Shown here: positions 38,370 to 57,801 of the stretch, piece after piece
Layout of the letters: every line of letters begins with the position of its first letter
How positions within the stretch are numbered: position 1 is the stretch's first letter
Assembly: GCA_047495785.1 (NCBI GenBank)
Contig: JBLDXI010000013.1
Span: 3,906,001 to 3,970,000 of the forward strand
DNA from: Lepidodermella squamata
Lineage: Eukaryota > Animalia > Gastrotricha
Direction of reading: 5' to 3'
DNA length: 64,000 nt
Notes under the pieces: model-generated
The model's input: the letters and a program-made list of their open reading frames with translations, nothing else
What the model was told of the DNA's origin: nothing
Databases searched by the model: none
Position numbers and translations under genes: made by a program

Positions 38370-41300
38370 TTATTTCGAAAAACGCTGTTGCATCGTGTTG
38401 AGTTGTTGCAGAATCGGCGAGGGCAGATCAATCGGCAGGTAGTCGTCGAAGAATTGGCGAGTGGCAGCCAATTCACGCTCCCAGAAGTCCTTATCCAGGC
38501 CGAAGAGAGCGTCGTAGTCGAACGACGACAGGCCAGACGTATTGAGGCCGTTTTCACGCGACGGCACGCCAAAGCCCAGCTGGTTGATTTCAGCGCACTG
38601 CTCGCCGTCGATGCGGCGGAAAATCCAGTCGAGAACGCGGCTGTTCTCGCTGAAGCCCGGCCATAGCAGACGGCCGTTGTTGTTCGTACGGAACCAGTTC
38701 ACCTCGAAGATTTTCGGGCGGTTCAGGTTCTTACGCAGGCCGAAGCTGAGCCAGTGGCGCAGGTACGTGCCGAAGTTCAGACCGAAGTACGCCCGCATGG
38801 CGAACGGGTCTTGAACCATGCGGTTGACGTCATTGTCCAGGGTGCGCATAGCGGCGCCGAGGAAGATGCCCTGGTTCCAGTCACCAGCCTCCATGACCAG
38901 CGGGATGCCGCCGGAATCAGTACGGCGGACACCGAAAACAATCGCGTCGATCACAACACCCTCGGGCTGGTCCCAGGCCGGGTCAATGGCCGGGCATTGC
39001 GCGACCGGGGTGCAGAAACGGGCGTTCGGGTGCGCCGCGGTCGTGCCATTCGAGCGAGACCACGCCTTACCACGCCAGTCCGTGATCGAAACACCGCTCG
39101 GCGGGTCTTCCAGGCCCTCCCAATAAACACCACCGTCACTGGTCTCGGCGACATTGGTGAAAATCGTGTTCTCGAAAATCATCTTCATCGCCTTGGGGTT
39201 GGTTCGGTAGTTCGTGCCGACGCAGAGACCGAAGAAGCCGGCTTCGGGGTTGATAGCCCGCAGGTTGCCCTGGTTGTCGAAACGCAGCCAGGCGGTGTCG
39301 TCGTTCAGGCACGTGATTTTGTAGCCGGGCAGGCTGGCTTCCATCATCGACAGGTGGAGACGGCCGCAGCCGGCGGTGAAGCACATGGCCATGTAGCGCT
39401 TCTTGCCGGCCGGGTTCGTCACGCCGATGATCATGATGTGTTCGGCCAAGAAACCCTGGCTGCAGGCCATCGCCGTACCGAGACGCAGGGCGAATGAGCG
39501 CTTGCTGGCCAGAGAGTTGCCGCCGTAGGCACTGCCATAAGAATGGATTTCCCAAGTCTCGGGAATGTGAGCGACAATCACACGTTCACTGAAAGAAGAA
39601 AAAGAAGAAAATTATCAAATAATTAAGGTGGGTTATTTTAATCCAATTTAAAAAATCGGCCGAAACATCTTCTAAATTAAGTCATTGTGAACGTTTTAGG
39701 ATGTTTGTGACCCTTCAAATCTAAACATTTCCACCGCGAGAATTCCTAACATATAAATAGCCACTAATAAAAACTAAGAAATAAACTACTTCGGCCCAAT
39801 TGATTTAGAATAAATCGCTTAAAAGAGTGAAGAACTTACGGATCACAAGGCCATTCACGGGTGTGGCGGTTCGGAATATTCAAAGGACCGCCGACTGAGT
39901 GAAGGCAGCGAACAAAGTTCTTCTGGCCAAGAGCGGCGAGCGCCTTATTGCCAGTTCGGGTCATGATAGTCAACGAGGCAGCGACGTAGGGCGAATCGGT
40001 CAGCTGGACACCGTAGCGGGCCATCGACGAGCCAACGGGGCCCATGCTGAACGGCAGGACGTACATGGTACGGCCAGTCATGGAATTGCGGAAGCGGTCC
40101 TCGTAGATGTGGGCGTAGTCGTCGGGCGACATCCACCGGCCGAGGTTCGACTTGACACCCGGGGCGGCGGGAGGCACGGCGTCCTCCTCGTTCGGGGTGA
40201 TGACGTAGGTCTTCTCCTCGTTCTGCATACGGCAGACGTCCTCAGGGTCAGTTCGGGCCAAATAGCAATTTCTGTACTTGGGCAACTTCCAAATCGTGCC
40301 CTGCTCCTCGGCAATGTGCAGCAGCTCGAGGCGTTCCTCGTACGAACCGTCGCAAATGTAGACCGAAGATGGGTTGCAGATCTCCATGGTATCGAGGACG
40401 AATTGACGAACCTTTGGCGGGAGGGCCTCCAGATCACCCTTGGCAATGGTGCACGGGTGAGAGTGGATGTAACGAACACCAACAACACGGCTAGGCATGT
40501 TTGTAATACGACTCTTCAGAGCATACAACTCGTTTTCAATTTCAACCGGGGTATCCATGGGCAGTTGTTCTTGGAAGAATTTCTTCAGACCACGGTATTC
40601 TTCCAGCCAGAAATCATGCGGTACTGACAAGAGCTGTTCCATATCGACAGGCGGGAGGCCGTCGACGTTGATTGAGTTGGCTGACGGGATCATGCCGATC
40701 GGGGACACGTTCGCGCAGTCTTCGCCCTCGAGACGGCGGCAGATCCAGTCGAGGACACGGCTGTTTTCACCGTAGCCAGGCCAGAGGAACTTTCCGGACT
40801 TTTGATCTTTACGGAACCAGTTGACATGGTAGATCTTGGGAAGCTTCAGACCGCGAATTTGAGCGAAGTGCAACCAATGGCGCAAATAGTGACCAAAGCT
40901 GTAGAATAAATATTAACAATTAAAAAATTGAATTTTTTAATTTAAGTTTTGAAATAAAATTTTTAAAATTTAAAATTTTGAATTTTGAATTTAACAGGCA
41001 AAAATCCGCCCTAAAAGTATTCCATTCAGCAATTTTAACAAATTTAATAATTTAGATAATCTTGATCATAATATTTGAAAATCCAATTTATATAAAAATT
41101 TATACCAAAAATTCACAAAATTTATTGAAAATAGCTCAAGACTTACTTGTAACCGAAGAAAGGCTTCATGGCGAACGGATCGCTGCGGACGACTTTAACA
41201 GCCGGGCCATCCTGGGCAGCGGCTGTGGTTTCCGAGCGGACGGTAGCACCAACGAAAACACCGTGGTTCCACGAGAAGCTCTCATAGACGAGTGGGACAC

Positions 41301-42621
41301 CCTCGGGGCGGCGGCCACCGAAGATCACCGCATCGATTGGGACACCCTTCGGGCTCTCCCAGTCTTCGTCGATAATCGGGCATTGATGGGCCGGAGCAGC
41401 GAAACGCGAGTTGGGGTGAGCAGCCGGGCGGCCACAGTCTGGCGTCCACGGCTTGCCATGCCAGTCGGTGATAGCAATGCCAGCTGGGGGCATCTCCATA
41501 CCCTCCCACCAGACACCGCCATCAGAGGTCGACGCGACATTTGTGAAGACAGTGTTTTCGAAAATCGTAGCCATAGCCATCGGGTTTGAATCCATGGAAG
41601 TACCAGGCGCGACACCGAAAAATCCAGCCTCGGGATTGATAGCGTGAAGAACGCCCTTATCATCAAATCGCATCCAGCAAATATCGTCACCGATGCAGGT
41701 AACCTTGTAGCCGGGGATGGTCGGGGTCAACATGGCCAGATTAGTTTTACCACAAGCGGATGGGAAAGCGGCCGTGATGTATTTTTTCTTGCCATTCGGC
41801 ATTTCAATGCGAGAAATCAACATGTGCTCGGCGAACCAACCTTCATCTCGAGCGATCGTGCAACCAATGCGAAGGGCGAAACACTTTTTACCGAGAAGAG
41901 AGTTGCCGCCGTAACCAGAGCCGAAAGACTTGATTTCATATTTATCGGGGAAATGGGCGACTAACACCTTCTCAGGATTGCATGGCCAGCTGTTGATGAT
42001 GGGGCGTTGAGCCGGAAGGGGGCAGCCGATAGAATGGAGACAACGGACGAAATCTCCGACACCTAGGGTGTCCAGAACACGCTCACCCATACGAGTCATA
42101 ATACGCATAGATAGCACAACATAAGCCGAGTCAGTCAGTTGGATGCCGATTTTCGACAGGGTCGAGCCGACTGGACCCATGCTGAAGGGAATAACGTACA
42201 TGGTGCGGCCCTTCATGCAACCAGGCCAGCGTTCTAGAGCTGCCTTTTCGTACTCCTCAGGCGACATCCAGATACCAAGTTCGCCCTTGACGCCCTCTTT
42301 CGGGGTGGGCACGGCCTCTTCCCTCCTTTTCGTGACAATGACGGTTTTTGATTCAACGCGAGCAACATCAGCCGGGTCGGTCAGGGCCAGGTAGCAGTTC
42401 TTGTACTTCGGCAGCGGCTTCAACGCGCCTTCTTTGACCAGAGAAGCGATCAACTTATCAGCCTCCTCTTGCGAGCCGTCGCAGATCCATAGATTGTCCG
42501 GCTTGCAAATGGCGACGTTTTCTTCGACGAAATCGCGCACTTTTCGCGATAGATGCGCCCAATCGCCGTTGATCACTGGGATCGCCAGCTGAGCCGAGCT
42601 GTCAGTGCGAGCACGGGTCAT
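38370..42621 (-). CDS. PCK: Double-domain GTP-dependent PEPCK, copy B (exons 42621-41147, 40898-39840, 39588-38370; 1250 aa)
   Basis: Two phase-2 GT-AG introns join to give GYN-FGHYL and CDP-ERV. Domain 1 has [51 protein letters not shown] and [12 protein letters not shown]. It continues without a stop into a second PEPCK fold. Confidence 0.95.
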
Positions 42622-43030
42622 TCCAGATTTAACAACACACTATACCTCCTTAATATTATCTCTCTAAAAAAAAAACAAATCAGAACATTGAAATCAAATT
42701 TATTCAAATTTTGAAATACGGATGGATTTTATAATAAGATAGCATGCAATTTCGCACCATCCAACGAAAAATTTGAAGAGAGGTGAAGATAAAATCAAGT
42801 TTTATCTAGTGCGCCAAATAAATTATCACGAGTATCTCTAGAAAATTGACTCGGAGTGAATAGTAACACGGGTTTTAATGCTAAAATTGAGAAGTATTTT
42901 GTTTCTGACAAGACTCATCCTAGTTGAACTGGACGACAAATACAAAAGCAAGAGGGCGAGACTGATGTATCACTAACCACCACATCAATTAATCGAGTCA
43001 TTCAAGTCTTTCGTTGCTTGATTTTCATGT

Positions 43031-46000
43031 TTACAACTTTCCTTGCAGGACGTTCAGTTGCTGGAGAAGAGCCGATGGCAGGTCGACTGGCAGTTGTTCG
43101 TCGAAGAACTTGCGAGTAGCAGCAAGTTCGCGCTTCCAGAAATCGCTATCAATGCCGAACAGGCCGTCGTAGTCGAACTGAGCCAGGCCGTTGGTGTTGA
43201 TACCGCCATCGCGAGCCGGGACGCCCAGGCCTAGCTTATTGACCTCGGCGCACTGTTCGCCCTCGAGGCGTCGGAAAACCCAATCGACGACGCGAGCATT
43301 TTCGCCGAAACCTGGCCAAAGGAGGCGGCCGTTGTTGTTCGTGCGGAACCAGTTGACCTGGTAGACCTTGGGCAGTTGCAGGCCTTTGCGGAGGCCAAAG
43401 CCGAGCCAGTGGCGCAGGTAGGTTCCGAAATTAACACCGAAATACGCGCGCATCGAGAACGGGTCGTGGACTACCTGGTTCGAGGCGGTGTCCAGGGTGC
43501 GCAGAGCCGCGCCCAGGAACACACCCTGGTTCCAGTCGCCGGCCTCCATGACCAGCGGCATTCCACCGGCATCGGTGCGGTGAGTTCCGAACAGGATCGC
43601 ATCGATGACAACACCCTCCTGATCGTCCCAGGCCGGGTCAGCGACCGGGCACTGAGAAATCGGGGTGCAGAAACGCGAGTTGGGCTGAGCGGCTGGGGTT
43701 CCGCTCGCACGGGTCCAGGCCTTACCGCGCCAGTCCGTGATCGAAATGCCGGTCGGAGGCTCCTCCAGACCCTCCCAGAACACGCCACCATCAGAGGTCT
43801 CGGCAACATTGGTGAAAATCGTGTTTTCGAAGACCATCTTCATGGCCTTGGGGTTGGTTTGGTAGTTCGTGCCTACGCACAGGCCGAAAATACCAGCCTC
43901 AGGGTTGACAGCGCGCAGCTGGCCGTGGTTATCGAACTGCAGCCAGGCGGTGTCGTCGTTCATGCAGGAGATCTTATAGCCGGGGAGGGCCGACTCCATC
44001 ATGGACATGTGCAGGCGACCGCAGCCGGCCGGGAAACACAGGGCGAAGTAGCGCTTCTTGCCAGCCGGGTTCGTGACACCGATGATCTTGATGCGTTCGG
44101 CCATGAAGCCCTGGCTAGCGCCCATTGCCGAGCCGAGGCGGAGAGCGAACGAGCGCTTGCTAGCAATCGAGTTGCCACCATAAGCGCTGCCATACGAGTG
44201 GATCTCCCAAGTTTCGGGAATGTGGGCGACGATGACACGGTCCCTGAACAAAACAACAAAAATGTCGGTTATAAACACTTTCTACTGCCAAATAGTATCG
44301 CGAAACTACGCATTGTTATATATTATCTAAATTGGGCGTGTTCAAAGGTCAAAAAACGCGTGGTTTGTTGATAATAAACGCCTCCTCAATTTTTCATAAT
44401 TTTGGGCGAAACTAGTGACGATCAAATGCCAAATGGTAGAATTGATTTTTCATTAATTTCGCGCTAGAGCGAGATGAGATTTTATATTCCATCTAAAACG
44501 GACCATACCCTAAAAATGGGAGAAACTATTAGGCGATCTAAAATAGCCCCGATGAAAGTAAGACAGCTAATATTCAAGGTGCCTGAAAACTAGGACAGCC
44601 TTATATTAAAGCCAAAAAATAATATAATGGGAAGTTTTGGTATATTCGACAGGTTGGAGCTAAAGTATGTTCGAGCGCGATTTTTGAGAGACTTTTTGCT
44701 TTAACTCACAGAATTCCTAACTGTGCCAAACTTCTAAAATTTACTCTATAGGTCAACTTACGGATCGCAAGGCCATTCGCGGGTATGGCGGTTGGGGACG
44801 TCGAGCGGTCCACCGACTGAATGCAGGCACTTGACGAAGTTCTTCTGACCCAGAGCAGTCAGAGCCTTGTTGCCAGTTCGAGTCATAATCGTCAGAGAAG
44901 CGGCAACATAGGGCGAATCTGTCAGCTGGACACCATAACGAGCCATGGTAGACGCAATCGGGCCCATGCTGAACGGCAGGACGTACATGGTACGGCCAGT
45001 CATCGAGTGCTTGAAGCGGTCCTGGTAGATGCCAGCGTATTCCTGCGGCGACTTCCACTTGCCGAGGATTGACTTGACACCAGCAGCCGGGGTCGGGGTA
45101 ACATCCTCCTCAAGCGGGGTGACAGTGAAAGTATTCGCTTCGGCAGCGACGCGGCCAACATCGTCCGGGTCAGTCCGGGCCAAGTAGCAATTGCGGTACT
45201 TGTTCAGCTTAACAATCGTGCCCTGGTCCTCGGCGATTTTCAGGAGCTCGAGGCGTTCCTCGTACGAGCCATCGCAGATGTAGACAGAAGCCGGGTTGCA
45301 GGTTTCAATCGTGTCCAAAACGAATTGACGCACCTTAGGCGGCAGGGCTTCCAGGTCACCCTTGGCAATGGTGCACGGGTGAGAGTGGATGTAGCGAACG
45401 CCGACAATGCGACGCGGGATGTTGGTAATACGGCTCTTCAAGGCGTACAACTCGTTTTCGATTTCAACCGGGGTATCCATCGGCAGCTGTTCCTGGAAGA
45501 ACTTCTTAATACCGCGGTATTCTTCCAGCCAGAATTCCTTCGGAACAGACAGCAATTGCTCCATGTCGATGTTGCCAGACAGGCCTTTCAGGTTGATGGA
45601 GTCGAGTTTCGGGACATAGCCGACCGGTGACAAATCGGCGCAGTCTTCGCCTTCCAAACGGCGGCAGATCCAGTCGATAACGCGGCTGTTCTCGCCGAAA
45701 CCAGGCCAGAGGAACTTGCCGGTCTTGGTGCACTTGCGGAACCAGTTGACGTGGTAGATCTTGGGCAGCTTCAGACCACGGATTTGACCGAAATGCAGCC
45801 AGTGGCGCAAGTAGTGGCCAAAGCTAAAGCAAAACAAGATTGTTAACTAATGACCCAAAATTCATCTAGATTTGAATTTTTTAATAAAACTAAAAAAAAT
45901 CCGCCTTAGAAAAAATAGTACTTATTAGCTTACTTGTAGCCGAAGAATGGCTTCATAGCGAAGGGGTCACTTCGGACGACCTTGACAGCGGGGCCATCCT

Positions 46001-47378
46001 GAGCGGCCGCGGTTGTTTCCGAGCGAACAGTCGCGCCAGCAAAAACACCGTGGTTCCACGAGAAGGTCTCGAAGACGAGTGGGACACCCTCAGGGCGACG
46101 ACCGCCGAAAATAACAGCGCTGATTGGGACACCCTTCGGGCTCTCCCAGTCCTTGTCAATGATCGGGCAGTTCTCGGCAGGGGCCGCGAAACGCGAGTTG
46201 GGGTGAGCGGCGAGGCGGCCGCAGTCTGGGGTCCACGGCTTGCCATGCCAGTCGGTGATAGCAACGCCAGCGGGGGGCATCTCCATACCCTCCCACCAGA
46301 CACCGCCATCAGAGGTCGCAGCAACGTTGGTGAAAATCGTGTTCTCGAAAATGGTAGCCATAGCCATAGGGTTCGAGTCGTTCGAAGTACCAGGCGCGAC
46401 ACCGAAAAATCCAGCCTCGGGATTGATAGCCCGCAAGACGCCCTTATCGTCGAATCGCATCCAGCAAATATCGTCACCGATGCAGGTGACCTTGTAGCCG
46501 GGGATGGTCGGGGTCAACATGGCTAGGTTAGTCTTGCCGCAGGCCGATGGGAAAGCAGCGGTGATGTAATGGGCCTTGCCATTCGGCATTTCGATGCGGG
46601 AGATCAACATGTGTTCAGCGAACCAACCTTCATCTCGAGCGATGGTGCAACCAATACGAAGGGCGAAGCACTTCTTGCCCAACAGAGCGTTACCACCATA
46701 GGCGGAGCCAAATGACTTAATCTCGTATTTATCCGGGAAGTGAGCGACTAGGACCTTCTCCGGGTTACAGGCCCAGCCGTTAGTCAGTTGGCGGGTCGTA
46801 GGCAGAGGGCAACCGACCGAGTGCAGGGCGTGGACGAAATCTCCGACGCCCAAGCAGTCCAGTACAGCTTGACCCATGCGAGTCATGACACGCATCGATA
46901 GGACGACGTACTGCGAATCGGTGAGTTCAACGCCGATTTTCGACAGGGTCGAACCGACCGGGCCCATGCTGAATGGTACCACGTACATGGTGCGGCCCTT
47001 CATGCAACCAGGCCAGCGTTCTAGAGCTGCCTTTTCGTACTCCTCAGGCGACATCCAGATACCAAGTTCGCCATTAACGCCTTGCTTCGGGGTTGGGACG
47101 GCATCTTCCCTCCGCTTGGTGACAATGACGGTCTTTGATTCGACTCGAGCGACATCGGCCGGGTCGGTCAAGGCCAAATAGCAGTTCTTGTACTTCTTCA
47201 GCGGCTTCAACAAACCTTGTTTGACCATTGATTCGGTCAAAGTTTGCGCCTCTTCGAGCGAGCCGTCGCAGATCCAGAGATTGTCAGGTTGGCAGAGGGC
47301 GACATTCTCCTCGACGAAGGCGCGAACCTTCTTCTTCAACGCATCGTAGTTACCGTGGATAACGGGAACGGATGACAT
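43031..47378 (-). CDS. PCK: Double-domain GTP-dependent PEPCK, copy A (exons 47378-45934, 45823-44762, 44243-43031; 1239 aa)
   Basis: Same architecture and intron positions as copy B. Exon lengths 1445+1062+1213 = 3720 nt, in frame. Confidence 0.95.
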
Positions 47379-47596
47379 TTTAAAATTAGGTAAAATTCAG
47401 GTTAAAATAGCACTAAAGAAACGAATTTCGAAACCGCCAAATCTTTATTGTTTCCGAATATAGCTACAGAGTTCATTCAGCGCAGTGATGAAGAGAGGAT
47501 AAGTAATGCAAAACAAGTCATCGATCATCGATTATTTTGAACTAGTAGGGTGACGGTGTTTTAAGAGCGTTAAATTATATACTACCTTTCGACGGC

Positions 47597-50508
47597 TTAA
47601 CTTTGCTTTGGCTGTTCAGGCAGCGGGATATCGACGCGGTTCGAAGCCCAGGAAGGCTCCGCCTTTTCCAGGCGGTGGTCAGGGAAGCTTTCCCAAGGGG
47701 TGTTCAGCTCGAATTTACGGTACTCCTGAGCCAATTCGACTGGCTCAATAACGACGCGCTAAAAATGAACAAGTTATAGAGCAAATCTAATTTATATAAA
47801 ACAACACTGGGATGGAAATTTTGAGGTTTAGTCGCTAGATTTTCTATACAGAGCTGGAAATGCGTCTGTGCGTATATGAAATAAACACATTAAATATACG
47901 CCGGCGATGCAGGGAGGGGGGCGTACTCATCGAAGCGCGCTGTTCTGAGCTATCCTAGATTCAGACAGCAATTTTACGCGAAAATTATCGATTGAGCGAA
48001 GCCGCAAAGAGCACTGAATGCTGAATATAATAATACTATGTTGTTTATGAGCCTTGAAGACGTCGAGCGCGGTTTTTTCTCTACTTTTTTTCCTTATACT
48101 TATCAAACGCCAAGCTCTCTACATCGCGATTACGACAACATGCAGTCCTATTATATTAGTAGCTTCTGAGCACCGTAAAAAGCAATATACATATATTCAA
48201 AACAACACTATCGGCTTGCGTTTTTTCATGTACTAACCCAGCCACACCAACAAATAATAAAATGCGTCGTAGTTTTATCCTACAGCAGCTGAACGTGCGC
48301 CGGTTTCAGACAAGGACATTTTTCGCAGTAAATACGTTGGCTTGAACAAATAATGATAATAATAATAATAAATGTATAACATTGTAGTGCGAGACTGGAA
48401 AACGAACTTGGGCATAATGAGGTTAATACTACGAGATAGCATTCTTCACGTATTGCAGCCAACGTAACTCACGAAAAGGATTACAATGGACGGGAAACAA
48501 CAAAAGGGCGTGGCCGAGAAGCGTGAGTAATCCCAGATACGTTTACACTGGAAATGATACCTCGAATGCCCATATGCATTGAGCTCTCAATTACCAGTGT
48601 GATCTAATACATCAAACCGCGCGGTTCAAATCATACCACGGTAGGTTTTGTTTGGATAAAATCAACACGAAATGCAAATTAAGCTGCTATATAACAAAGG
48701 TCACGCTTTTGAAATAGAAAGCTAACGAATGCTAAAGCAGCCACGCCGGCTAATTTTTTGCTATGGGTAAACACGCGACTTAACAGGGGGTTAGGGTTCA
48801 ACCGCAAAAAATCGTCAATTATGACCGAGCGGTTGTAAACAGCATGCCTTATATGACAGGCTGAATTGCGCAATAACAATGGTCAGAAAAAAATAAGATG
48901 CACCACACTTCGTGAAAAATATAGCCACGTGGCGTATTTGCACTATGCTTGGACAATGGCCAGCCAAGATTGATAGCTAACATTGTTGCCAGGAAAACAA
49001 CACGAGCCTATGGGCGCACGCCTAGTTTCAGACACAATTTTCACTGCCAAGCCAGATGTTTCAAATTTAACACTAAACCTGATTACAGACATAAATTTCG
49101 ATTGCTATACTATTTCAACCTCAGAAGTGGGACGCATTTCCAGCTTGTATTTGCGGAGTTCAAGCCCATTCAAAACATTTCGTATTCGTCTGCGAATCGC
49201 GAACATTTTTTTCAACAACGCAACCAGGGTTAACTTTGAAAAAAGTTTTTCGTTATACCCATAAATCTGAAATCTTAACTGTAGGTAAGCAATGTAATTC
49301 CGAATTATTCTGCCAAATTTTGCCAATTTTAAATTGATTCTAGAAACTTAAAACGTGTTGGTTCAACTGGCAATTAGAGGGCTATATTGGTTGCTCGTTT
49401 GGATGCTCAACGGCATCGCGAGTTTCAAAATTAGCCTGTGAAATTGTGGTCGAAATTTGAATAAAATTATTGAGACGGATTAGCAGGTTTTTTATTCACG
49501 TTTTTAATCAAAGATTATCTTCATGCCTAATCTCACCGAATTTAGTCTTCCTTCGACCTCAGAAAGTAAAGGTAACAGATTACCCGCGCCAAATCTTATT
49601 AAAAATTTATTACATAGATATTACAAGGGATCCCAGAACGACTTCGGAAGCCTCCTGTTCTCAGCTTTTTCATAAAGTAACTTGGCAAGAAATCCCTTTT
49701 CTAATCTTCAAACCTGAAAATCTCCTGTGAAGCCTTAAATACCCAAGGCAATCCAAATTTGCCCGTCGTCAGGGTTAAACGAGAATGTGATATTGTAAAC
49801 GTGAATTATGGGGCTGGTTTAAGAATGGAAATTAATACAAACCTTGTGCTCATCATCGTAGCGAACTTCGGTGTAACCAGTAAGCGGGAAGTCCTTGCGG
49901 AAAGGATGGCCTTCAAACCCGTAATCGGTTAGAATTCGGCGCAAATCCGGGTGATTGCGGAAGAAAACGCCATACATATCGTAGACTTCACGTTCGTACC
50001 AATTCGCACCAGCAAAAACTGACACAGCCGAGTCAATAGGCGTCACCTCGTCCGTATAGGTTTTCACCCGAATTCGGCTATTGAATCGCAGTGATAGCAA
50101 ATTATAGACGACTTCAAATCGATATTGACGCGATGGCATATCAACGCCAGCAATATCGGCAATGTTGAGGTATTGGGCGTTGTGGTGGTCTTTCAGGAAA
50201 GCCAGGACCGGAAGAACACCATCCGGGTGGATGAGGATCTCCAGCTCATCGCCATGGCTGACTTGCGCCTTTTGAACGTACTTAGGCAGGCACTCGGCGA
50301 CATAGCGGCCAAATGCAACCAGGGTATCTGTTGTTTCAGCGGGCACCTGGCGAACTGAAGGTCCGCGAGGAGCTTTCGGCTTTGGCGGGGGCGGAGGCGG
50401 TGGGGCTGTTGACAGAGGGGCGATGAAAAACTTGTTTGTTGCCACCGGCATCAGCCTGACAGCACTGCGCATGAACACAGTCGACAAGCGGTTGAGCGCC
50501 AATGACAT
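47597..50508 (-). CDS. NDUFS3: NADH dehydrogenase Fe-S protein 3 (exons 50508-49843, 47758-47597; 275 aa)
   Basis: Transit-peptide-like N-terminus and [40 protein letters not shown] second exon, absent from the ORF track, reads [26 protein letters not shown] after a 2084-nt intron. Confidence 0.97.
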
Positions 50509-50669
50509 TATATATAACGTGTATCCAAAACACTATAAAACAACAAGAGAAAAACAAGATGTAGCTGAATTTTTTTCATCTCCAATATTTCTCAAAAGAC
50601 TACATTACAAATGACACCGAAACGTGTAAAGAAAGAGCGCTTTATTTATTCAATTTTTTTTGCCCGACT

Positions 50670-53600
50670 TCAAAAGTGAGCAGTTACAGCCTGAACTTCG
50701 GCGAGGTCAGAGTACAACTGGTCGACGGTGGTACCCATTCGCCGGGCGAGTTCAGCCTGTTGCCGGTAGCCGAGCCATACGTATTGATAGACTAGATCGC
50801 CGTCGATGATTGATCGAAGTTGGTTATACAGAGGACGTTGTGATGACCGGTACAGACGATAGGCAGACGGGTTCAAGCCGGCGAGATGAGGCAAATTTGC
50901 CACAAGCAGTTTCTAGATTAAAAAAAGCATAAAATGGTAACAATTCATGGTACAATTACGCTAATAATTGAATTTTACGAATGAAAAACAAAAATACGGT
51001 GACTAAAGCAGGGTTTTTCGATGGACTATAAACGGAGACTTAAAATATCAGATAATTTGAGTCAATATCGGTGTCATTTGAAAGTCAACAAGAAATAATT
51101 TACTGTGCTGAAGTCAATTACCCCATCTTAACGCAATGCAACCTCACAGAACAGGTAATATAGTGCAAAATGGTCCATAAGTGGGATTTAGCTTCCGGGG
51201 GACCATTGATAAATGACAGCAATGATCGTTGCGAGAAGTCAGTCAATCGCCATGGTCGAAATCAATTTTAGCTCATGGCACTAGCCCGTAAGAGATATAT
51301 TTTACCATTCCAATTCTAACAGTAAATCGAACTTTAAAGACGAATTTGGTAATATTCAATTTATGAAAAATTCGTATCCTGTGTTTCACTTTTAGCTCTC
51401 ATCATTGGCCTGAAAGGAATTATCACTTGAACCACTTTCCATTAGTCATTTTTCGAACTAAAAGCAACCTAAAACACTTACTTGCAACATGAGAAGACGT
51501 CGATATAGCTGTTCTTTGACCGGCAGAAGCATTCCGATACCACCGTCAAGCGTCGGGAGATAGGTCACGTGACGATGGTCATATTGCAGGAAAAATCGCG
51601 GGTCTTTTCGAAGCGGGCCAAGTCGACATCTGACTCGAACCATAGACGCAACACGACTTCCCAAGTTCATATCAGCTCGAGGTATCAAACGCTGGCCGCC
51701 GTAACTCTCACGCGACTCGGGCTGATGTGTGAAAACGATGAGGTTATTGTCAATATCAGTTGCGATGAAACCGAGCTGCGTGTTATCGACTAGAAAATCA
51801 ACGGTCATAAGGGGCATCGGGCGGAAATCGCGGGCGATCAACGATAGAATTTTATGATCGTCTTGATACCGCACCAACGCGACTGATTTTTGAATATCAC
51901 CAAGCAACGCGAAGTTTTTCAACCCACACGAGGCAATGTTGTACAACCGCGAGTCGATGAAAGAAACTGGTAGAATGTCGGAGTCTTTCAGGGTGAACAT
52001 GTACACACGCTGGCCAACTGAGACGAGTAAAGACCCAGAAACGACGCACATCGAAGTGACAGGACCTTTCTCTTCACGAACGCAGATCTTCTTCAACCGG
52101 TAACGCGTCAAAGGCTGACCAGGTTCAGGGACTACATCCGCGATTTCGAAGATCAGGATTCGTCCACGACTCAAAACATCCTCGCCGTAAGAAAAATTTG
52201 TTCCGATAGCGATCAATTCGGGTGAGGCGACCTGGCTATCACCCTTTAGCTTTGAAACTCGCATGCAGGTAACTTGTTCCCAGTCATCGAATTCGAATTT
52301 ACCAGCCGGGGCCGCTTCCCAACTCGCGCTGGTATACAGCTGTAACGTGTACTTTTTCGCATTCGGCCAAATGAAGCGATTATCACGTTCGAGAGGGACT
52401 AGTTGGCGTTCCTCGGTCTCCCAATGCACCAATTTCGTCAATTTTTCAGTGCTTTCGGAGTAAGTGACGGCGAATAGCTGTTGGCTGGGAACGTAGTTGA
52501 CAAAGTGGGGCGTTGCTTTGAGGGGCACGCGGCGGGTAGGCCAGACGTCGGTGTAATCGACGTGGGTGGGTAGGACTGCGATTCGAAGTTCGCCCTCGAC
52601 GTTGTAGTAGACGAAACCACGCTCGCAGTTCGGGTTGTGGAATTCGGCGAGACAAGACACGCTACCTTCAACGACCATAGGATGGCACCTCAAGAATGGT
52701 CGACTGAAAAGAGACAAAAATTCGATTAAAATAAAAATAAAATTATATTTGTTGATATTTTCATTCAAATCTTGAAATTCGTAACAGCTATTTCTCACAA
52801 TTTTCCACCACCCAAAACATAATATCAATCAGAACCTTGAGATTCAAGCTGATATATCAAATATTGTTGATCATGACTGATCGCGTTGAAAAATACAGAA
52901 TTTGATAGATCTGAACGAAAAAAATGTATTTGATTATCTCGTCATTTGCCAAAATTTGTCAAAATTTCCAGATCAAGCTACTTTTCAAGAAACTCACAGT
53001 TTGTTCGTCATCAACCAGTGCGGGCGAGGGCCACAAACCACAACTCCACAGTAGCCAGCAATGTTCTCAAACGGCCGGAAAATTGCTGGTCTCTTGCTTA
53101 TATGCAGTTTATTCGCACCTTGCTGCGGCGTTTCCTGGTCTTCAACGCGGCTATTCACCACCCCCAAGCTTTGATGCTGAGCAGCCGCTGGTTGCCAAAC
53201 CGAGGTGCGGCGAACTCGTTGCAGATCGACTTGGATCGTTTCGTTCGGAATTCGAGCAAAACGCGACGCGTCTTGGGCCAAGCCGAAACGATACGCTTCA
53301 TAAACGTAAATTCGATTCCCGGCGGTCGCAGCGAATAGGTACAAATGTTTGCGGCATGAATCAACGTTAACAAAGCACAACTCAGAAATCGTAGGCAGGG
53401 AAATATCATCCGTCTTCTGATCAACGTCCACAAATAGTGTATGCGTCAAAACCTGAGGCCCATCCGCGAAATTGCCGCAACGAAAAACAAGCTCAACTTC
53501 GGGTAGAACGTATAGCTCCAAACAGCCGTTTGACCTGACAAAGGCCATGTATTGGCGAGAGGTCATCGGAATGTCCTCTTTTTTTACTTCAGGAACGGTA

Positions 53601-55867
53601 GATTGGGTCGGAGGAGCAGCGGCAGAATCACCATAGAGCAATAAATCCTCATCATCAGCATCAGTAGGTAGGTTACTGATAGATGAAGCCGACGGTCTGT
53701 TGGGGGTAGCTTGGGTCGGAACCGCGAAACCGGTCTCAGTCTTGTAATCCCGCATCGATAAAAGCGACACGATGCCTGATTTATCGATGAAACAAGTCAC
53801 CGCAGTCGCGTCTGATGCCAATTTTTCAAGCCTGGTCAAGCTCAGCTGCGAATCTTGGTTCAACTCAAGTAGCATGACCGTCCCATCTGAGGTTAGTAGA
53901 GTGACAAACGGGTCGGAACAAGCGGCTTGCACAACAGTTTTATCACCGAAAGAAACTGTATGCACCTCACGTTGGCCGTCATGTAGAAGAGCGCAGGTCG
54001 ACGTTACTTGAACAATGAAACGCCCCTGGCCGAGACTTGCGGCTAAAACCGTTGAAAAAATTGTTGAAAAGCCCCTCGTGTCTTCCACCTCAGCAATTTC
54101 TTGCCCGGTTTCTAAAATTAAGGTGGAGTCGGAACGGCTGACTATGAGGAACGAATGCATCTCCGGCGACTGTTCCGCGCCGGCGGGGCGATAGGCACAG
54201 GCCACAGTCCACATATCAACGCAACCAGGTAGCGAAAACCCGGTAACGATTTGGGGGCGGATATGACGTTGCATCATACAAACCGCCCCGTTCCTACCAT
54301 GCCCGGCTGTTACGATGAGTTCAAGCTCAGGCTCCTGTCGTTGCCCGCAAAATTCCTCCGATAAACCACTCGCTTGAGCAATAACAGCTTGTGAGCAAGG
54401 TCCGGTAGTGGTTAAACTTGAGCAAACTTCGAATTGGTAAGCAGTAGTATCAGCGATATTATTCGCCGAGTCCGCGTCTTTATCCTCCAACAACAAATCA
54501 AGATCATCATTATTTTGAGCACTAGCCAAGTCCAATTTCCGTCGTTTATAGTCCGGCTGAAATTCGCGAACACCGTCGGAAGGTTCGATAACTCGGTAGC
54601 GTAAAAGCAGTGAATTGCCAAGCCTCGATCCCAAAAACACGATATTCGGCTTCAAAACAGAAAGACACGTCGATAGAACGGAAGAGCCGGCTTTATCGAA
54701 TCGGAATGTTCGCATAAATCGCATCGAATCAGCAAAAAGGGACAAAATGTACAAATCGCCGTTAGATAGCGAAACTAAAATTGTTCGATCATCTTTCGGG
54801 CCGATGAAAGACGCCTGGCAGCAGTCGAGCGAAATCGTCAAATCAGGCTGGTTGAAACTTGGTTTCACAGCAGCTAGTCCCGTAGTCCGCTCTCCCAGGC
54901 TATTCACTGCAACGCCGAAAAGTGGGACACTTTGATTCAGGTAGAGTAGCGAATTATTGCAGAAAAGTAACGCGCCGCCAATTGGGCGTGGAATTGACAG
55001 TAATTTGAAAGAGTCAAATGGCAACCCTTCGACGTACCAAATCACAGGAGGCATCAGCGGTTGACCAGGATGGGCGTTATTCGAAGCCGCATCTTCTAAA
55101 TCCGCAGTTAAAGAAACAGCTGCGACGACGCAGCTATCGATTCGACAAGCTAAACGACCAACCCAGTTACGATGACTTTCGCCTAGAATGAGCAAAGTCG
55201 GCTCAAAATAGCCGTGTAGAAACTGAATGTCATGGACGTGAATCATCGGAACGTTCGGCAGTTTCGTGACATCAATCGTGTAAGATGATAAGCGGCTATC
55301 GATAGCCATCGGATGCGAATTCGCACCACCAACACTCAGCGAAAACGCCTTTCCAATATCCATACTTTCCTCCAAAAATGAAGACCGCCTTTGCTTGCTG
55401 AATTCATATCGCAGTGGGATAATAGCGATTAAACGGCCATAGAAAAGGCCGCTGATGCACCGATGTTGAGGATCGACCCGAATCTGAGGAACAAATGCGT
55501 TTCTCACAGCACCAGATGCGTGATCTTGGTCTTCGAAATAATTGAGCGCTAACGTTTTCAAGTCATGCGTATCTTCGTCGTAACGAACAATTGAGACTTT
55601 TGCGTCGGGAAAAGCTAGGGCTAGGCAATCTCGATCATTCACGCCCGCAAAGCGGACACATTGCATAGAACAGACATTTCCAGAAAATCGAAAAGTTTGA
55701 CAATGGTCGAACACAACGGCCTTATTCTCATTTTCGACGATTCGATAAACGTCCAGGTAATTAACTGAAGACACTAGCAAATTCTCTTCATTATTGTGGT
55801 AGAAATGACACACCAAACTGTTTTCCACGCCAGTATGCCGGTGCACCTGCTTGAATATCGCATACAT
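50670..55867 (-). CDS. CPSF1: Cleavage and polyadenylation specificity factor subunit 1 (3 exons)
   Basis: MYAIFKQVH, THDLKTL, DIQFLHGYFEPTLLIL, FLGSRLGNSLLLRY, GHGRNGA, DVVPEPGQPLT, TLDGGIG, LPHLAGLNP. Confidence 0.97.
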
Positions 55868-56226
55868 TTATAACACCTAGTTTTGAGAACAAAAACGCAA
55901 AATTATTTTAAGGTTTTTATTACTTTTCACCAAAATATTATTATGCAATTTTCCCTCATTTACCATTTTTCTTGTTAAAATAAAATCATTCACATGGAAC
56001 ATTCGCAATTATTTTTAATCGGTTTGATATCTTGGATTATCTGCGTTAAGAATCAGCAAAATAATTATTCAATTTTAGTATTTACATTCATGATGTTAAT
56101 CACACATACTAATAATTAAGTGTAAATTAGTGTCAGATGTTCAGATCATCACCGACTGACGAACAAGCATTTTTAATTTATAAAGAGCCATAAATAACGA
56201 AAATGTGCTATTAGGATTATCCTCGA

Positions 56227-57801
<1,575 letters not shown>

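Follow-up and report, generated by a model that had tools for sequence, protein, structure and literature searches.

Why would an animal carry a phosphoenolpyruvate carboxykinase (PEPCK) joined to a second PEPCK that seems to have lost its active site? This question is raised by a 64,000-nucleotide (nt) stretch of the gastrotrich Lepidodermella squamata (GenBank assembly GCA_047495785.1, contig JBLDXI010000013.1, positions 3,906,001 to 3,970,000 of the forward strand), called here the window, whose minus strand carries two tandem PEPCK genes, A and B. GTP-PEPCK is a textbook gluconeogenic enzyme, treated as a monomer under mainly transcriptional control and without classical allosteric regulation, and the animal GTP-PEPCKs known are single-domain proteins of about 620 amino acids (aa). 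A and B each encode a real fusion of two PEPCK domains (D1 and D2), as established by the window, a DNA run and three independent metagenome contigs of a relative. The fusion itself, the loss of PEPCK chemistry from D2 and the selection acting on D2 stand on far firmer ground than the regulation by D2 that is proposed below.

The two fusion genes

Gene models were obtained from the list of open reading frames (ORFs) for 37.5-48.5 kb together with a reading of the splice sites, and the exons were joined by script. Six long ORFs lie on the minus strand of this region in two sets of three, giving two genes of three exons each, with B as the upstream and A as the downstream copy on that strand. 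The spliced models give the same protein lengths as a first-pass annotation made from the letters alone, and the genes and their domain junctions are placed as follows:

38370..42621, minus strand: gene A, exons 42621-41147, 40898-39840 and 39588-38370; 1250 aa; PEPCK-pseudoPEPCK fusion
43031..47378, minus strand: gene B, exons 47378-45934, 45823-44762 and 44243-43031; 1239 aa; PEPCK-pseudoPEPCK fusion
40451..40495, minus strand: junction between D1 and D2 of gene A, aa 627-641; 15 aa, corresponding to the tail at the N-terminus of the following PEPCK
45373..45417, minus strand: junction between D1 and D2 of gene B, aa 618-632; 15 aa

Against Pfam, each protein reads PEPCK_N-PEPCK_GTP-PEPCK_N-PEPCK_GTP, with E-values from 1e-37 to 1e-123. 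D1 consists of a full-length PEPCK_N and PEPCK_GTP (PF17297 and PF00821; in exon 1, E 2e-90 and 2e-111), and its PEPCK_GTP is completed in exon 2. D2 covers PEPCK_GTP from position 1 to 357 of 357 (E 3e-123) together with PEPCK_N (E 3e-59), both at full length, which places it within the GTP-PEPCK fold, and its last exon matches rat cPEPCK chains at E 5e-152 (HMMER against PDB chains). In exon 2 of each gene the first PEPCK_GTP ends and the second PEPCK_N begins in a single frame without a stop, so the first-pass description of an exon running from one PEPCK through a linker of about 15 aa into the next applies to both copies. The 15 junction residues align with the usual N-terminal tail of PEPCK, and the two units are therefore joined head to tail without an added spacer. 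An 11-residue junction peptide is invariant in A, B and the metagenomic relative. Judged from the reading frames, each gene would encode a single polypeptide of about 138 kDa.

Each gene has two introns, all of the GT..AG type and all in phase 2. Their divergence between the copies, noted at first reading, is visible in their lengths, which for introns 1 and 2 are 248 and 251 nt in gene A vs 110 and 518 nt in gene B. All four introns (41147/40898, 39840/39588, 45934/45823 and 44762/44243) open with GTAAG directly after AA or CC, so that retention of any one of them puts an in-frame TAA directly after the exon.

Active site and selection in the second domain

Residue numbers are those of rat cPEPCK and were set by the HMMER alignment of the last D2 exon to PDB chains. 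In PEPCK, K290 and T291 bind the phosphates of the nucleotide together with the second metal, the Mn ligands are K244, H264 and D311, and catalysis requires closure of the lid. The main features concerned are:

41740..41766, minus strand: canonical P-loop FPSACGKTN in D1 of gene A (gene B equivalent at 46527-46553)
39354..39380, minus strand: degenerate P-loop FTAGCGRLH in D2 of gene A (S286A, A287G, K290R, T291L, N292H)
44009..44035, minus strand: degenerate P-loop FPAGCGRLH in D2 of gene B
39492..39512, minus strand: LASKRSF in D2 of gene A, with Arg for the Mn ligand K244 (same site in gene B at 44147-44167)
44087..44101, minus strand: AERIK in D2 of gene B, with Arg for the Mn ligand H264 (D2 of gene A keeps His, 39432-39446)
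38811..38843, minus strand: lid remnant of 11 residues in D2 of gene A (D1 lid of 18 residues at 41182-41235; gene B D2 lid at 43466-43498)

In D1 of both genes, all 22 catalytic and ligand positions are canonical and the lid has 18 residues (positions checked: R87, Y235, K243, K244, H264, SACGKTN, D310, D311, N403, R405, R436, W516/F517/F525/F530/N533 and the lid); F530 is Tyr in D1 of gene A, a variant that is also present in other active PEPCKs. Judged by these residues, D1 is catalytically complete, as the first-pass annotation had it.

D2 of both copies carries K244R, S286A, A287G, K290R, T291L, N292H, G309N and F525L, and the motif changes first reported (GKKCF to SKRSF, PSACGKTN to (T/P)AGCGRLH, GDD to NDD) are all found in both. 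H264R, which was not among the changes first reported, is present in D2 of gene B only, while gene A keeps H264 there, and D311 is kept in both. Between the conserved R and DPF the lid counts 11 residues vs 18 in D1, within a normal range of 16-18, which reproduces the shortening by seven residues given earlier. D2 thus departs from catalytic PEPCKs in the P-loop (K290/T291 and S286), in the Mn ligand set K244/H264/D311 and in lid length. It retains R87, Y235, K243, C288, G289, D310, D311, N403, R405, R436, W516, F517, F530 and N533, and with them the Arg, Tyr and Asn residues that contact oxaloacetate and phosphoenolpyruvate (PEP) and most of the guanine pocket; the retention of the substrate Arg residues (NxRF and the R87 equivalent) and of much of the guanine pocket had been pointed out before, and F525, now Leu, is its altered member.

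Among PDB chains, D2 aligns best with 4gno, 4gmz and 4gmm of rat cPEPCK, from which 8-10 residues are missing exactly at the lid. 4GNO, 4GMZ and 4GMM are engineered lid-deletion variants of rat cPEPCK, and the paper associated with them, cited in PMC12529880, bears the title 'The omega-loop lid domain of PEPCK is essential for catalytic function'. With Arg-Leu in place of K290/T291, with K244R (and H264R in B), with S286A and with the lid reduced from 18 to 11 residues, D2 cannot, as far as its residues tell, do PEPCK chemistry as known. The loops of PEPCK are described in PMC12529880. In an alignment of 29 sequences, 197 columns are invariant in canonical PEPCKs, and 36 of these are altered in D2, in most cases with one residue shared by A, B and the relative. 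The altered columns cluster at 234-245, 258-266, 283-298, 309-312, 335-337, 462-463, 484-488 and 525, which correspond to the active-site loops. On this alignment the pocket of D2 is remodelled and then frozen, not eroding.

The comparison set for D2 consists of one close relative and one distant soil fragment. The same fusion is carried by three ENA metagenome contigs from the related organism, whose D2 has the same SKRSF, GCGRLH and NDD motifs. Between A and B, the synonymous rate (dS) is about 0.9-1.0, and the ratio of the non-synonymous to the synonymous rate (dN/dS) is 0.097 for D1 and 0.139 for D2, the latter far from the value near 1 that had been named at the outset as speaking against a selected domain. 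Between the window and the relative, the D2 core shows a proportion of non-synonymous differences (pN) of 0.058 and D1 one of 0.115, at a synonymous proportion (pS) of about 0.76, and amino-acid identity is 91% in the D2 core and 85% in D1. Moreover, the 40 strain differences listed between the window and contigs of the runs described below are without exception synonymous, and 29 fall in D2 of gene B. On these patterns D2 is under strong purifying selection, equal to that on D1, and comparison of A, B and the relative indicates that the altered active-site residues of D2 are themselves conserved. The strong conservation of D2, without stops or frameshifts, that was claimed on first reading is thus borne out by dN/dS, by pN against saturated pS and by the synonymous differences. 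As for the proposal of a selected pseudoenzyme, the dN/dS values and the alignment sustain its two parts on selection and on the loss of residues that PEPCK requires. A soil metatranscriptome fragment of 256 aa is 60% identical to the C-terminus of D2 and has the same 11-residue lid, so D2-type domains also occur in more distant relatives.

Synonymous distances also date the fusion. The pS between the relative and either window gene is 0.68-0.76 (saturated) vs 0.52-0.56 between A and B, so the duplication into A and B is later than the split from the relative, and the fusion, on these distances, predates both. In a relative-rate test, unique changes number 46 in B vs 18 in A for D1, and 42 in B vs 9 in A for D2; by this measure gene A is the slower-evolving paralogue and gene B the faster in both domains. 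A D2 tree with the topology (B,(A,relative)), supported at 94/89, was not accepted, as the synonymous distances and the D1 tree place the duplication after the split, with B evolving faster. The second intron of the relative (L002:3807-3845, about 40 nt) lies after ...GQKNF, about 25 codons upstream of the site of intron 2 in the window (after ...WPCDP), and the position of intron 2 (39589-39839 and 44244-44761 in the window) has, on this comparison, shifted or turned over between close relatives.

Transcripts and operon arrangement

Transcript data consist of assembled contigs of four runs (including X1, X2 and X4), placed on 39830-45829, a region that takes in both D1-D2 junctions as well as the gap between the genes. 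One intron of each gene (two of four) is borne out by RNA contigs: intron 1 of A (40899-41146) is spliced out as modelled in a contig of X4, and intron 2 of B (44244-44761) in contigs of X1, X2 and X4, whereas contigs of the DNA-type run cover the introns. No joint, poly(A), loose end or foreign leader is reported at either D1-D2 junction among the contigs of the four runs, so the transcripts ending or trans-spliced at the linker that would have told against the fusion were not seen, and the RNA contigs are compatible with a continuous mRNA across the junction. As the organism trans-splices (see below), the absence of a leader at the junction is a meaningful though weak negative. RNA contigs break at 40429/40501, near the junction of gene A; a stretch of 38 nt (40434-40471) is identical in genes A and B, and an assembler would break there whatever the structure of the transcript. 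A loose end at 40544 (run X4), close enough to the junction to be a possible transcript end, is T7-adaptor sequence without poly(A) and was rejected as an artefact of the library.

The gap between the genes holds one feature of a different kind:

42664..42704, minus strand: operon-type junction from B to A, with AATAAA at 42704-42699, poly(A) addition at 42688, and a T-tract and AG acceptor at 42665-42664 with a non-genomic leader

In RNA contigs, the poly(A) tail of gene B is added 11 nt past AATAAA. The 5' end of the gene A mRNA carries a 23-nt non-genomic leader, identical in two runs from different studies (loose ends from X1 and X4), whose letters in mRNA sense are TCTGCGAATTTGATTTGTGTCTA, possibly ending ...AG. 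Its acceptor AG is preceded by the T-tract and lies 22 nt past the poly(A) site of gene B, and because of this close succession B and A look like consecutive cistrons of a spliced-leader operon. The leader occurs nowhere in the window and was not found in a literature search, and to our knowledge it matches no described spliced leader.

A similar arrangement is seen upstream of the ATG of gene B (47405-47449), with AATAAA at 47449-47444 followed about 30 nt on by tttctttAG, at the spacing of the B-to-A junction, which suggests that another cistron may end upstream of gene B and that gene B may also be trans-spliced. In the 3' untranslated region of gene B (42846-42953), one X1 RNA contig joins 42953 to the reverse complement of about 42846-42878; this joint looks like a fold-back or strand-switch chimera. 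Farther upstream of the pair on the minus strand, ORFs of 229, 456+957 and 524 aa lie at 49819-57801 of the window. Contig L001 of the relative (L001:105-7357) has NDUFS3-like, SF3B3/RSE1-like and PI4-kinase genes in an order that matches these ORFs, and the gene order upstream in the relative reads PI4-kinase, SF3B3-like, NDUFS3-like, PEPCK. The cluster upstream of PEPCK looks syntenic between the window and the relative.

Origin, explanations and known systems

The architecture was searched for with a fragment from a first search and then with a 1256-aa protein and a length filter that excluded ordinary PEPCKs. Proteins with two, three or four PEPCK units were found in Amoebozoa, chytrid fungi, a red alga and many environmental contigs and eukaryotes (P0151-P0158, P0270-P0286 and P0502-P0515). 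The amoebozoan genera are Pyxidicula, Thecamoeba, Soliformovum and Vermamoeba, with proteins of up to 2430 aa; the chytrids are Cladochytrium replicatum (1813 aa) and Nowakowskiella, and the red alga is Porphyridium purpureum (1858 aa). Several of these database entries are annotated merely as PEPCK. In many of the protist proteins one unit is degenerate, with K244 replaced, H264R, a lid of 9-10 residues and an intact G-K-T in the P-loop. The degenerate unit stands first in P0284, P0285 and P0155 and last in P0151, P0270 and P0002, and H264R is recurrent. A literature search returned no paper describing tandem or pseudo-PEPCKs. The architecture itself is therefore not new, as multi-PEPCK proteins sit unremarked in public databases; the first-pass statement that no description of it was known agrees with the literature search, but the arrangement is not unique to these genes, given the units of Amoebozoa, chytrids and Porphyridium.

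Both trees place D1 and D2 of the window among the PEPCKs of Metazoa (clade support 100/99 in the more careful of the two), and all units of the protist multi-PEPCKs form a separate clade (100/99). Common descent with the protist, fungal and red-algal proteins finds no support in the tree, where D1 and D2 are not nested among them; the animal fusion is accordingly independent and the shared degenerate features are convergent. The fusion thus arose, on this phylogeny, inside Metazoa and independently of the protist multi-PEPCK proteins. The metazoan PEPCK clade is a polytomy in the tree, in which an origin of D2 from D1 and one from an older animal paralogue are not separable, and the stem branch of D2 measures 1.02 vs 0.41 for D1.

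A search of representative sequences with D2 gave no full-length D2-type protein; the best match was an ordinary PEPCK at 54% identity and the sole D2-like match was a soil fragment of 183 aa. A scan of JGI metagenomes with an alignment of exon 2, run on generic PEPCK peptide patterns, gave only ordinary single-domain PEPCKs and thereby no additional relatives. One protein of a Logan assembly (P0009, 635 aa) stands alone with a Met start, forms a long branch within the animal clade and has a degenerate active site (R87S, Y235F, K243S, H264N, P-loop PGVEKTS and a lid of 9 residues); from its sequence it may be a free-standing pseudo-PEPCK of another organism.

What, then, might D2 do? The reading towards which we lean, with a confidence only a little above even, is that D1 is the catalyst and that D2 is a non-catalytic, ligand-binding partner that regulates or stabilises D1 in the same chain. 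D1 would carry out the reaction. The substrate contacts and most of the guanine pocket are kept in D2 and Arg is gained at 244 and 290, which suggests a remodelled pocket that would be metal-free and more cationic. Such a pocket would still bind an anionic ligand, whether substrate, product or guanine nucleotide, and ligand-bound D2 may then regulate or stabilise D1 within the chain, along the route taken by hexokinase I and PFK-1. Several points weigh against this reading. The 138-kDa product is deduced from the ORFs and RNA contigs; none of the listed RNA contigs bridges a D1-D2 junction, and, as the data are short assembled contigs, forms that are trans-spliced or cleaved internally could go unnoticed if rare. 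Moreover, D2 keeps D310, D311, C288 and G289, and in gene A also H264, residues that would leave room for a residual or altered activity.

The last point leads to an explanation that we consider unlikely but the least so of the alternatives, namely that D2 catalyses another reaction (for example, decarboxylation or isomerisation of an oxo-acid without a metal, or chemistry on another phosphoryl compound) and that the fusion is bifunctional. It would account for altered active-site residues that are strictly conserved and not drifting, for the retention of D310, D311, C288, R87, Y235, R405 and R436, and for purifying selection in the D2 core that is at least equal to that in D1. However, D2 has lost the Lys and Thr of the P-loop, one (copy A) or two (copy B) of its three Mn ligands, and part of a lid that, by the title quoted above, is said to be essential for catalysis; the additional loss of H264 in copy B and the faster evolution of this copy suit a binding module more than an exact catalytic site, and no known PEPCK-fold enzyme with such a site is present among the PDB matches. 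Somewhat less probable again is processing at the junction peptide, releasing a normal PEPCK of 70 kDa and a free pseudo-PEPCK of 70 kDa. The invariance of this peptide in A, B and the relative despite saturated synonymous sites is unusual for a passive linker, but the junction aligns with the ordinary N-terminal tail of PEPCK and not with an extra spacer, the domains of protist multi-PEPCKs likewise abut directly, and no known cleavage motif is marked in the junction sequence.

That D1 and D2 come from separate mRNAs or are made as separate proteins, by trans-splicing of a leader onto the junction or by a start within it, is given very little probability. The machinery exists, as seen from the leader of gene A at an AG 22 nt past the poly(A) site of gene B, and the junction of gene A contains a Met codon. 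This Met, however, is absent from gene B and the relative, neither a stop codon nor an AATAAA or T-tract acceptor is present at the junction, which A, B and the gene of the relative all cross in an open frame, and the contigs of the four runs report no loose end, poly(A) or joint at either junction. That D2 is a decaying duplicate that has yet to acquire a stop, or the fusion an assembly artefact, is scarcely credible: the long stem branch of D2 would suit decay, but dN/dS of D2, the 40 synonymous differences out of 40 and a D2 core that is 91% identical to the relative at saturated synonymous sites all oppose it, and the same structure is found in independent assemblies and in the DNA run. 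A decaying D2 duplicate is effectively refuted by the selection data.

A natural and selected pair of PEPCK and dead PEPCK would offer a ready system in which to ask whether the PEPCK fold senses ligands or regulates intramolecularly, and it would bring central metabolism into the small group of pseudoenzyme pairs known from duplication and fusion. With the amoebozoan multi-PEPCKs, which are in databases and apparently undescribed, as a parallel, the question becomes comparative. A tentative and rather doubtful extension is that an active PEPCK tied covalently to a lid-shortened pseudoenzyme without Mn ligands evolved at least twice, in this animal lineage and in Amoebozoa, with convergent loss of K244, H264R and a short lid. 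This would point to an unrecognised general control of the PEP-oxaloacetate node by an intramolecular sensor or clamp that descends from PEPCK, like that of hexokinase I, in an enzyme so far seen as a monomer unregulated at the protein level.

Among known systems, the closest in fold is monomeric GTP-PEPCK (rat cPEPCK, PDB 2QEW and related), of which D1 and D2 both have the full fold and D1 all checked residues; here, however, two units are joined per chain and the second is without K244, S286, K290, T291, N292 and a full lid. The absence of lid residues, seen in D2 as an alignment gap, is shared with 4GNO, 4GMZ and 4GMM, but these are laboratory mutants of an otherwise intact enzyme, whereas D2 is natural and selected and also has changes in the P-loop and Mn site. 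Protist multi-PEPCKs resemble the fusion in the head-to-tail joining of units without a spacer and in a degenerate unit with K244 lost and a short lid, with H264R common to copy B. They differ in forming a separate clade, in degenerate units that stand first or last and keep G-K-T where D2 has G-R-L, and in that chytrid and red-algal units are mostly all canonical.

Pairs of active and pseudoenzyme domains in tandem are also known from receptor tyrosine phosphatases (D1-D2) and JAK kinases (JH1-JH2), in which, as here, a dead paralogous domain is covalently tied to its active sibling; unlike the PEPCK fusion, to which they have no homology, these are signalling proteins and not enzymes of central metabolism. 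Duplication and fusion also gave rise to mammalian hexokinase I and eukaryotic PFK-1, in which one half has turned regulatory, a role that is demonstrated. The gastrotrich proteins have the same features of two homologous halves in one chain, one intact and one without catalytic residues that keeps ligand residues and is under purifying selection. The folds are unrelated, however, and regulation by the dead half, shown for hexokinase I and PFK-1, is what D2 may exert in the PEPCK fusion.

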